Shown here: positions 35,301 to 36,205 of the stretch, in pieces
Position numbering within the stretch: the first letter of the stretch is position 1
Layout of the letters: every line of letters starts with the position of its first letter
Source of the DNA: Macrostomum lignano
Lineage: Eukaryota
Length of the DNA: 64,000 bases
Direction of reading: 5' to 3'
Assembly: GCA_002269645.1 (NCBI GenBank)
Contig: NIVC01000211.1
Span: 62,001 to 126,000, forward strand
The notes under the pieces: generated by a model
Told to the model about the DNA's origin: nothing
Database searches by the model: none
The model's input: the letters and a program-made list of their open reading frames with translations, nothing else
Position numbers and translations under genes: made by a program

Positions 35301-36205
35301 ATAGATAGATAGAAAAATAGATAGATAGATAGATAGATAGATAGATAGATAGATTGATTGATTGATTGACAGGTTCTCACCTGGTCCGCATACACGGGAC
35401 TCTCGGGCTCATAGTAGCCATCAGGTGTGATCCTGTATCCGTCATGCGACCAATACGAATAGTCAAACGCGAAGGAATTCTTTTTACCACTGGTGCTGGT
35501 TATGGTTGTCTGGTTGCCTTTCATCTGTATGACCATTTTGCTGTTGTGACTCATTTCTCGGTCATCGTGCAGACGCCAAAGCAGCAAATATTGTGTAAAG
35601 TTAAGGCAAATGGTAAAAAATTGCGATATTTATGCATAGAATTTATTGTCGAAACCCTTTTTTGATTTTTTAGGTCAGACTTTTGAATAACTAACAGACT
35701 AAATTTACCAGTTTCTATAGATATACATGTATATACGAGTAGTTTTCAGGGAACAAATGCAAGACGGCATATTCAGTAATTATGTCTCGTGTTACGAATA
35801 ATATTAATTGCTTTTTCTATAAATTATTTGAAATCTGCCGTGTCTATGTAGCCGTTTGTTGTTTTATATGCTTCTGTGCAATCATCCATATATGTTATAA
35901 TTATTACACTATGAGATTACACAATTAATTGTAATTATGCAGATAATTATTAAGTTAGAAAATCACGCTAATTAGTTTCAAAGTCAGCATAATATATTAG
36001 CCCCATTTTTATAATGCGCTAATAGTCTCGAATATATGTCTCTAAATTTATATTTGATATCTCAAAAATTTAACCTTGTAAATTGGAACTTGGTAGTCAC
36101 TTCCCAAATAGGTGTAGTTAATAAGCTGTTTTAGGTCTCGATCGAATTATTTAAAAAGGATATGAATGGCCTCACTCGAACTGCTACTTTAATATTCTCA
36201 GCCAT
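26307..36205 (-). CDS. KIF28: Kinesin-3 family motor, KIF28/KLP-6-like; 14 exons, 1000 aa
   Basis: Exons 36205-36164, 35566-35381, 35207-34992, 34917-34580, 33967-33834, 33743-33673, 31495-31002, 30623-30295, 29551-29397, 28637-28215, 27603-27346, 27161-27051, 26960-26904, 26495-26307; total 3003 nt, all phases compatible. Motifs: [71 protein letters not shown] ([17 protein letters not shown]), FLDRKFLM…DPF, and a C-terminal C2-like segment. The subfamily call is from memory of KIF28-type sequences. Confidence 0.9.
26656..26880. repeat. (CTCAACTA/CTCAACCTA)n 8-9 bp repeat in kinesin intron 13
   Basis: Tandem short units. Confidence 0.9.
27720..28188. repeat. G-rich 42-bp minisatellite in kinesin intron 10
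   Basis: GGTTGCGGAGGCCTGGATCTGGGGG(T/C)TGGTTAATGGGGTGGG, about 10 copies. Confidence 0.95.
28685..29340. repeat. 21-bp minisatellite in kinesin intron 9 (CCAGTGTCTTGATGTTCTCTC)
   Basis: About 30 tandem copies. They generate the EHQDTGR/SQCLDVL junk ORFs. Confidence 0.97.
29683..30238. repeat. 16-bp minisatellite in kinesin intron 8 (GGTGCTGGCGCCCCTT / GGTGCTAAAGCCCCTT)
   Basis: Reverse complement of the array at 37705-39083. Confidence 0.97.
30652..30997. repeat. (GACA)n microsatellite filling kinesin intron 7
   Basis: About 85 GACA units. Confidence 0.98.
31530..32700. repeat. 21-25 bp minisatellite (AAACTTGGCGCCATCTCTGACCT) with a 294-bp higher-order period
   Basis: Identical derived ORFs start at 31691, 31985 and 32279, a spacing of 294 nt. 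Confidence 0.95.
33300..33605. repeat. 32-bp minisatellite (TTGAGTTGGGGAATCCCACCCAAAACATGACC) in kinesin intron 6
   Basis: About 9 copies. Confidence 0.92.
34190..34525. repeat. Degenerate ~32-bp purine-rich repeat (GAGATTAGATCATAGGG…) in kinesin intron 4
   Basis: Recurring GAGATTAGATCATA core. Confidence 0.8.
35221..35370. repeat. (GATA)n microsatellite filling kinesin intron 2
   Basis: Pure GATA run. Confidence 0.98.
35567..36163 (-). other. U12-type (minor spliceosome) AT-AC intron, 597 nt; first coding intron of the kinesin
   Basis: 5' site ATATCCTTTTT at 36163, branch box CCTTAAC at 35606-35600, 3' site …CTGCAC| at 35567. Removing it joins [14 protein letters not shown] to DDREM… in phase 0. 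Confidence 0.9.

Follow-up and report, generated by a model that had tools for sequence, protein, structure and literature searches.

In the 64,000-nt stretch of Macrostomum lignano DNA analysed here (the window), a gene of 14 exons can be assembled on the minus strand, starting with the ATG at 36205 and encoding a product of 1000 aa (Table 1). An exact-sequence look-up identified this protein over its full length as PAA87919.1 (BOX15_Mlig019522g1, UniProt A0A267GRK2), deposited under the name 'kinesin-like protein 6'. Pfam matches of the 1000-aa product are Kinesin (7.6e-103), extending over residues 10–356 and covering profile positions 1–327 of 327, FHA (2.7e-8) and KIF1B (5.3e-6). This order of an N-terminal motor followed by FHA and KIF1B domains is also that of the KIF28 (KIF28P)/C. 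elegans KLP-6 subfamily. In line with this, nearly every named top match in a full-length homology search is a KIF28P, KIF28 or 'kinesin-like protein 6', with KIF28-type proteins from molluscs, annelids, echinoderms and amphioxus showing 50–54% identity over the full length. With the 386-aa motor as query, the matches were partial KIF28P-like sequences from molluscs, an annelid and Ciona, with a top identity of 68%, while a near-full-length query gave a 99% match to M. lignano BOX15_Mlig019522g3. Domain set and named matches mark the product as a kinesin-3 of the KIF28/KLP-6 type, the KIF28 assignment already proposed in an earlier reading made from the sequence alone (hereafter, the sequence-only reading). 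In contrast to nearly all relatives, which possess N-x-R-E at the corresponding site, the M. lignano motif reads D-D-R-E. In M. lignano, two or more diverged paralogues (63% identity) exist besides the near-identical duplicated copies g1, g2 and g3.

Table 1. Features of the KIF28-type kinesin gene and of its first intron in the window.
Feature	Position	Strand	Remarks
Exon 1, coding part	36164..36205	-	ATG plus 13 codons; start of the kinesin motor domain
Intron 1	35567..36163	-	597 nt, phase 0, U12-type, AT-AC
U12-type 5' splice site ATATCCTTT	36155..36163	-	9/9 versus RTATCCTTT
Branch box GCCTTAAC	35600..35607	-	presumed branch adenosine at 35601 (second A of the box)
Spacer, branch box to terminal AC	35568..35599	-	holds possible cryptic acceptors AC, AA and AT
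3' splice site GCAC	35567..35570	-	last intron base 35567, 34 nt past the branch A
Exon 2	35381..35566	-	62 codons, ends VYADQ, followed by a GTGAGA donor
Exons 3-14, overall span	26307..35207	-	all introns GT-AG
Exons 3-6	35207-34992, 34917-34580, 33967-33834, 33743-33673	-	
Exons 7-10	31495-31002, 30623-30295, 29551-29397, 28637-28215	-	
Exons 11-14	27603-27346, 27161-27051, 26960-26904, 26495-26307	-	including the stop codon

The 12 introns from intron 2 to intron 13 are all of the GT-AG type. Introns 2, 4, 6, 7, 8, 9, 10 and 13 (26655–35366) are mostly filled, each by a tandem array of its own, among them (AGAT)37 at 35219–35366, (GACA)87 at 30651–30997, 31 copies of a 21-nt unit at 28687–29339, 12 copies of a 42-nt unit at 27691–28186 and an array of 23-, 75- and 294-nt units at 31554–32696. 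Unlike almost every GT-AG intron of the gene, the U12-type intron 1 is free of tandem arrays. On the plus strand, an LRWD1-like gene (11800–21400) with LRR, WD_LRWD1 and NCD2 matches, split by repeat-rich introns, neighbors the kinesin gene, as it does in the duplicate copy on contig NIVC01004248.1 (L008). The window and this contig are collinear copies with about 95–99% identity in unique sequence and with differing tandem arrays, which fits the large duplications known from the M. lignano genome (PMC5730564). Two long single-exon ORFs lack a Pfam match: the one at 39651–41036 (minus strand, 461 aa) looks like a multi-pass membrane protein, the other lies at 61433–63025 (plus strand, 530 aa).

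Intron 1 opens with ATATCCTTTTTA at 36163, directly after the 14th codon, TTC (Phe), ending at 36164, and closes with GTCTGCAC at 35567, whereupon exon 2 opens with GATGACCGAGAA (DDRE) at 35566. On the minus strand, the borders therefore read ccaaaATGGCTGAGAATATTAAAGTAGCAGTTCGAGTGAGGCCATTC/ATATCCTTTTTAAAT and CCATTTGCCTTAACTTTACACAATATTTGCTGCTTTGGCGTCTGCAC/GATGACCGAGAAATG (slashes mark splice junctions throughout), and the termini of the intron are AT and AC. When compared with the U12 consensus (donor RTATCCTTT, branch TTCCTTRAY; PMC1635337), the donor is perfect and the extended branch box TGCCTTAAC at 35608–35600 agrees with TTCCTTAAC (TTCCTTRAY) at eight of nine positions. This box is the sole good match within the last 60 nt of the intron and falls within the region from -55 to -5 scanned by intronIC. 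Joining exons 1 and 2 results in RPF-DD-RE. Re-reading of the minus strand has borne out every coordinate given in the sequence-only reading for exon 1, intron 1 and the acceptor, as well as its statements that U11/U12 signals are present and that splicing 36164 to 35566 restores the conserved motif. With its perfect ATATCCTTT donor, the CCTTAAC box near the 3' end and the terminal AC, intron 1 resembles the U12-type AT-AC class, from which it departs in being phase 0, a phase under-represented among U12-type introns (PMC7367187).

Taken alone, the RTATCCTTT 9-mer is statistically unremarkable, occurring once in the 64-kb window against 1.33 expected from shuffles. Since the motif reaches no significance on its own, the case for the donor rests on position and conservation: what goes beyond chance is its place right after the RPF codon, where seven other loci share the signal. 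Among other RTATCCT[TC] sites in the window, in L008 and in the locus of the diverged paralogue (L009), two have open upstream frames (+6379 and -2136); both were dismissed as chance occurrences, showing neither a downstream branch box nor a convincing coding context. Most of the excess of branch-box near-matches in the window is due to a 34-nt satellite at 51823–53350 (44 copies, 91% identity).

Between the in-frame stop at 35632–35630 and exon 2, no AG dinucleotide is present. Consequently, a GT-AG acceptor cannot supply the frame of exon 2, and the RPF/DDRE product, as found in four deposited M. lignano proteins, requires the junction at 35567. These deposits (PAA87919.1, PAA48056.1, A0A1I8J993 and A0A1I8FUW3) share one 19-residue start with RPF/DDRE and belong to two sets of annotation. 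For assembly Mlig_3_7, the GenBank models were derived from RNA-seq assemblies guided by the genome and from a de novo transcriptome mapped to it, rather than by ab initio prediction (PMC5730564). Identity of the spliced product with a deposited transcript-derived CDS is indirect but good evidence for the joining of 36164 to 35566 in the mRNA. Donor, branch box and acceptor are the same in the duplicate copy on NIVC01004248.1. The first exon had been described in the sequence-only reading as hidden; this holds for the ORF track, which missed it, but for nothing else, since the assembled protein is identical to PAA87919.1 and the public gene model thus contains exon 1.

Genomic loci of homologues were read directly after the RPF codon. 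The donor ATATCCTTT stands at this place in Pinctada imbricata (L002; branch box ACCTTAAC, spacing 11 nt, end TAC), Lamellibrachia satsuma (L004; CCCTTAAC, 10 nt, CAC), Priapulus caudatus (L007; TTCCTTAGT, 14 nt, CAC), Branchiostoma lanceolatum (L010; AACCTTAAC, 10 nt, CAC) and the plus-strand gene of Saccoglossus kowalevskii (L006; CTCCATAAC, 10 nt, TAC). A second S. kowalevskii gene, read at the donor end, likewise has ATATCCTTT, and so does the M. lignano paralogue Mlig025022g3 (L009, 63% identical protein; TTTCTTAAC, 30 nt, CAC). In Biomphalaria glabrata (L001), the donor is GTATCCTTT and the branch box TCCTTAAC, located 11 nt from a terminal TAG. Wherever the 3' end was read, exon 2 opens with AAT. 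The phase-0 position of intron 1 is thus common to KIF28 genes of molluscs, an annelid, a priapulid, a hemichordate and a cephalochordate, and the comparison of intron positions in KIF28 orthologues, suggested as a check in the sequence-only reading, reveals a U12-type intron directly after RPF in all species listed. Position and signals shared from molluscs to a cephalochordate mean that the KIF28 intron 1 is no younger than the bilaterian ancestor.

The Biomphalaria intron (L001 6046–6155) is 110 nt long and belongs to the U12-type GT-AG subtype, representing a switch from AT-AC to GT-AG that is said to be rare. Both the deeply conserved position and such a subtype switch in one lineage are further points of likeness to the U12-type class. 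At the intron end of Lamellibrachia satsuma (L004, about 7058–7127), the block of branch box and acceptor, TTGTTTCTGCCCTTAACCAACCCCAC, occurs twice, about 45 nt apart, giving two potential U12 3' ends. In a more distant KIF28-like paralogue (Orbicella, Octopus), no intron follows RPF, and a GT-AG intron is found 8 nt downstream (Orbicella, L003 694–740 and 6095–6140; Octopus, L005 17373–17420; AAC xxx xG/gtaagt). The latter could have arisen long ago from a U12 intron, converted to the U2 type by way of a cryptic donor close by, or could be unrelated to it. An old Nematostella model reading ...PEH/NSRE gives a hint that the AT-AC intron may also occur in cnidarians, its start resembling read-through from the intron.

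The homologue set comprised 240 database proteins, 190 with and 50 without the RxRPF head. In 189 of the 190 headed proteins, RPF is followed by two residues, then R or G and then E or D, and in the remaining one by NSKE with unchanged spacing; an insertion after RPF was found in none of the 190. Several headless models begin with read-through from the intron end, (H or Y)/N-x-R-E, as would result from a missed ...AC/AAT acceptor. Headless entries include P0004, P0122, P0144, P0152 and P0207, and the old Nematostella model is among the read-through starts. In three headless cases, Pinctada P0004, Saccoglossus P0017 and the M. lignano paralogue P0124, the missing exon was found upstream, behind a ATATCCTTT donor. 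For the last of these, Mlig025022g3 (intron at L009 9204–9958), the deposited protein starts inside exon 2, and the missing exon 1 lies at about 9162–9203. The warning of the sequence-only reading that annotation restricted to GT-AG would truncate the gene is thus justified in general, considering the 50 headless proteins out of 240 and the three recovered exons, and a GT-AG-only problem for AT-AC introns has been described (PMC1635337); at this locus, however, the public model is complete.

The one unusual feature of intron 1 is the distance between branch site and acceptor. From the presumed branch adenosine at 35601 to the last intron base, 34 nt were measured, confirming the caveat of the sequence-only reading that the spacing of about 34 nt is longer than usual, and the paralogue has 30 nt. 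In contrast, the orthologous introns of Pinctada, Biomphalaria, Lamellibrachia, Saccoglossus, Priapulus and Branchiostoma show the 10–14 nt usual for the class, and the optimum is given as 11–13 nt (PMC3584512). Short spacing is a feature of efficiency, and classifiers accept boxes up to about 45–55 nt away. In work by Dietrich and colleagues from 2001, spacings above about 20 nt reportedly activated nearer cryptic sites. The spacer is about 65% pyrimidine and interrupted by G residues, forming neither a clear tract nor a clearly tract-free sequence. From 35588 to 35569 there is no adenosine, so that a nearer branch site within 21 nt of the used AC is ruled out. A spacer hairpin shortening the effective distance found no support, the fold z being -0.2 in the window and -1.7 in the paralogue.

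Given the long spacing of 34 nt versus the optimum of 11–13 nt, a U12-type intron might be present in which a substantial share of the transcripts uses a cryptic acceptor at the canonical 10–13 nt from the branch adenosine (candidates being AA at 35591, AT at 35588 and ACAC/AAT at 35593), splicing then being error-prone or leading to an unproductive isoform. The choice of U12 3' sites has indeed been reported to be error-prone (PMC3584512), and U12 introns with AT-AA and AT-AT termini exist (PMC1635337). Moreover, two of the nearer sites are in frame, the AA acceptor ending at 35591 adding eight codons (YLLLWRLH) and the AT acceptor ending at 35588 adding seven (LLLWRLH). The third, ACAC/AAT, is located 8 nt past the branch adenosine (its AC ends at 35593), and 26 additional bases separate it from GAT GAC CGA GAA. 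It looks like the ancestral acceptor plus Asn codon, resembling xCAC/AAT of the other species, and its use would shift the frame and lead to a stop after 13 codons. However, RPF/DDRE is present in all four deposited M. lignano models, the inserts expected from the AA and AT acceptors are absent from these models and from the 190 headed homologues, and an insertion of any kind at the junction was seen in 0 of the 190. In addition, the long spacing seems to be tolerated in the M. lignano lineage, as the paralogue also has 30 nt. Substantial use of a cryptic acceptor is, hence, considered unlikely.

Far less probable is a U2-dependent AT-AC intron of the rare 'type II' class, removed by the major spliceosome. 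AT-AC termini also occur outside the U12-type class (PMC3584512, PMC1557818), and the long distance from box to 3' splice site is the more U2-like feature. Nevertheless, in U2-type AT-AC introns the donor is similar to the U2 consensus save for the terminal dinucleotide (PMC1557818), whereas positions +1 to +9 of intron 1 are a perfect U12 donor, and a U12 branch box is present. Besides, both donor and box have been conserved across phyla, in eight loci altogether, and the one locus which has turned into the U12 GT-AG subtype has yet kept GTATCCTTT and TCCTTAAC. That the motif is a chance occurrence without functional intron or exon 1, translation starting from the Met inside exon 2 (DDREM...), is hardly conceivable, even though one RTATCCTTT per window is at chance level and many database models of the family begin within exon 2. 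The donor sits exactly behind an open frame that starts with ATG and encodes the 14 conserved residues, exon, position and signals are common to the orthologues, and the deposited transcript-based models carry exon 1. Moreover, a motor deprived of the RxRP strand would leave the initial positions of Pfam's Kinesin profile unmatched.

Intron 1 (36163–35567, minus strand) of BOX15_Mlig019522g1 is, thus, very probably a U12-dependent AT-AC intron. In the minor pathway, the donor pairs with U11 and U6atac and the branch box with U12. For intron 1, dependence on the minor spliceosome and the choice of the branch adenosine are inferred from this established pathway: the U11/U12 di-snRNP would pair with the donor ATATCCTTT and the branch site GCCTTAAC, and U4atac/U6atac.U5 would then join. 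Removal of the intron between 36164 and 35566 would connect the 14 residues of exon 1 to DDREM and, by this, complete the first beta strand of the motor domain and the RxRP-F-x-x-R-E motif. An Rfam scan of the 64-kb window gave no match at gathering threshold to U11, U12, U4atac or U6atac genes, a result uninformative for the genome as a whole. All four minor snRNAs have been documented in the flatworms Schistosoma (PMC2770079) and Schmidtea (PMC6312358). A rate-limiting role of intron 1 in expression may be envisaged from the general hypothesis that slow U12 splicing limits expression (PMC3584512).

The spacing found in two M. lignano paralogues might also be read as a property of the lineage, the Macrostomum minor spliceosome routinely picking acceptors 30–35 nt past the branch box. 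This would amount to a lineage-wide relaxation or shift of a distance rule strictly observed in the systems examined to date, with the two kinesin paralogues as its first visible examples. At present, such a shift appears doubtful to us. A precedent for a lineage-wide change at the branch site is provided by the minor introns of Physarum polycephalum (bioRxiv 10.1101/2020.10.12.336362). There, however, the motif itself is altered (TTTGA) while still located 9–12 nt from the acceptor (bioRxiv 10.1101/2020.10.12.336362), whereas in M. lignano the motif is canonical and the distance alone is odd, and this in one gene family only. As only two related genes are concerned, the long spacing may characterize minor splicing in Macrostomum or may have been inherited once by the kinesin family.

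By its signals, intron 1 is an ordinary representative of a textbook intron class, and its junction has already been deposited in GenBank. The literature searched contained nothing specific on KIF28 minor introns, on U12-type or AT-AC introns of Macrostomum or on platyhelminth minor introns. A further flatworm can be added to the lineages with a minor splicing pathway, its activity being deduced from intron 1. For the kinesin family, the locus neatly illustrates how AT-AC introns cost first exons in annotation: about one-fifth of the KIF28-like database proteins are without the strand bearing the RxRP nucleotide-binding motif, and intron 1 is usable as a positional marker for repairing such headless models. 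The spacing is the sole point of wider interest at intron 1 and merits a genome-wide check. If distances of 30–34 nt were general in Macrostomum, this would be relevant to the way in which the minor spliceosome gauges the distance from branch box to acceptor.
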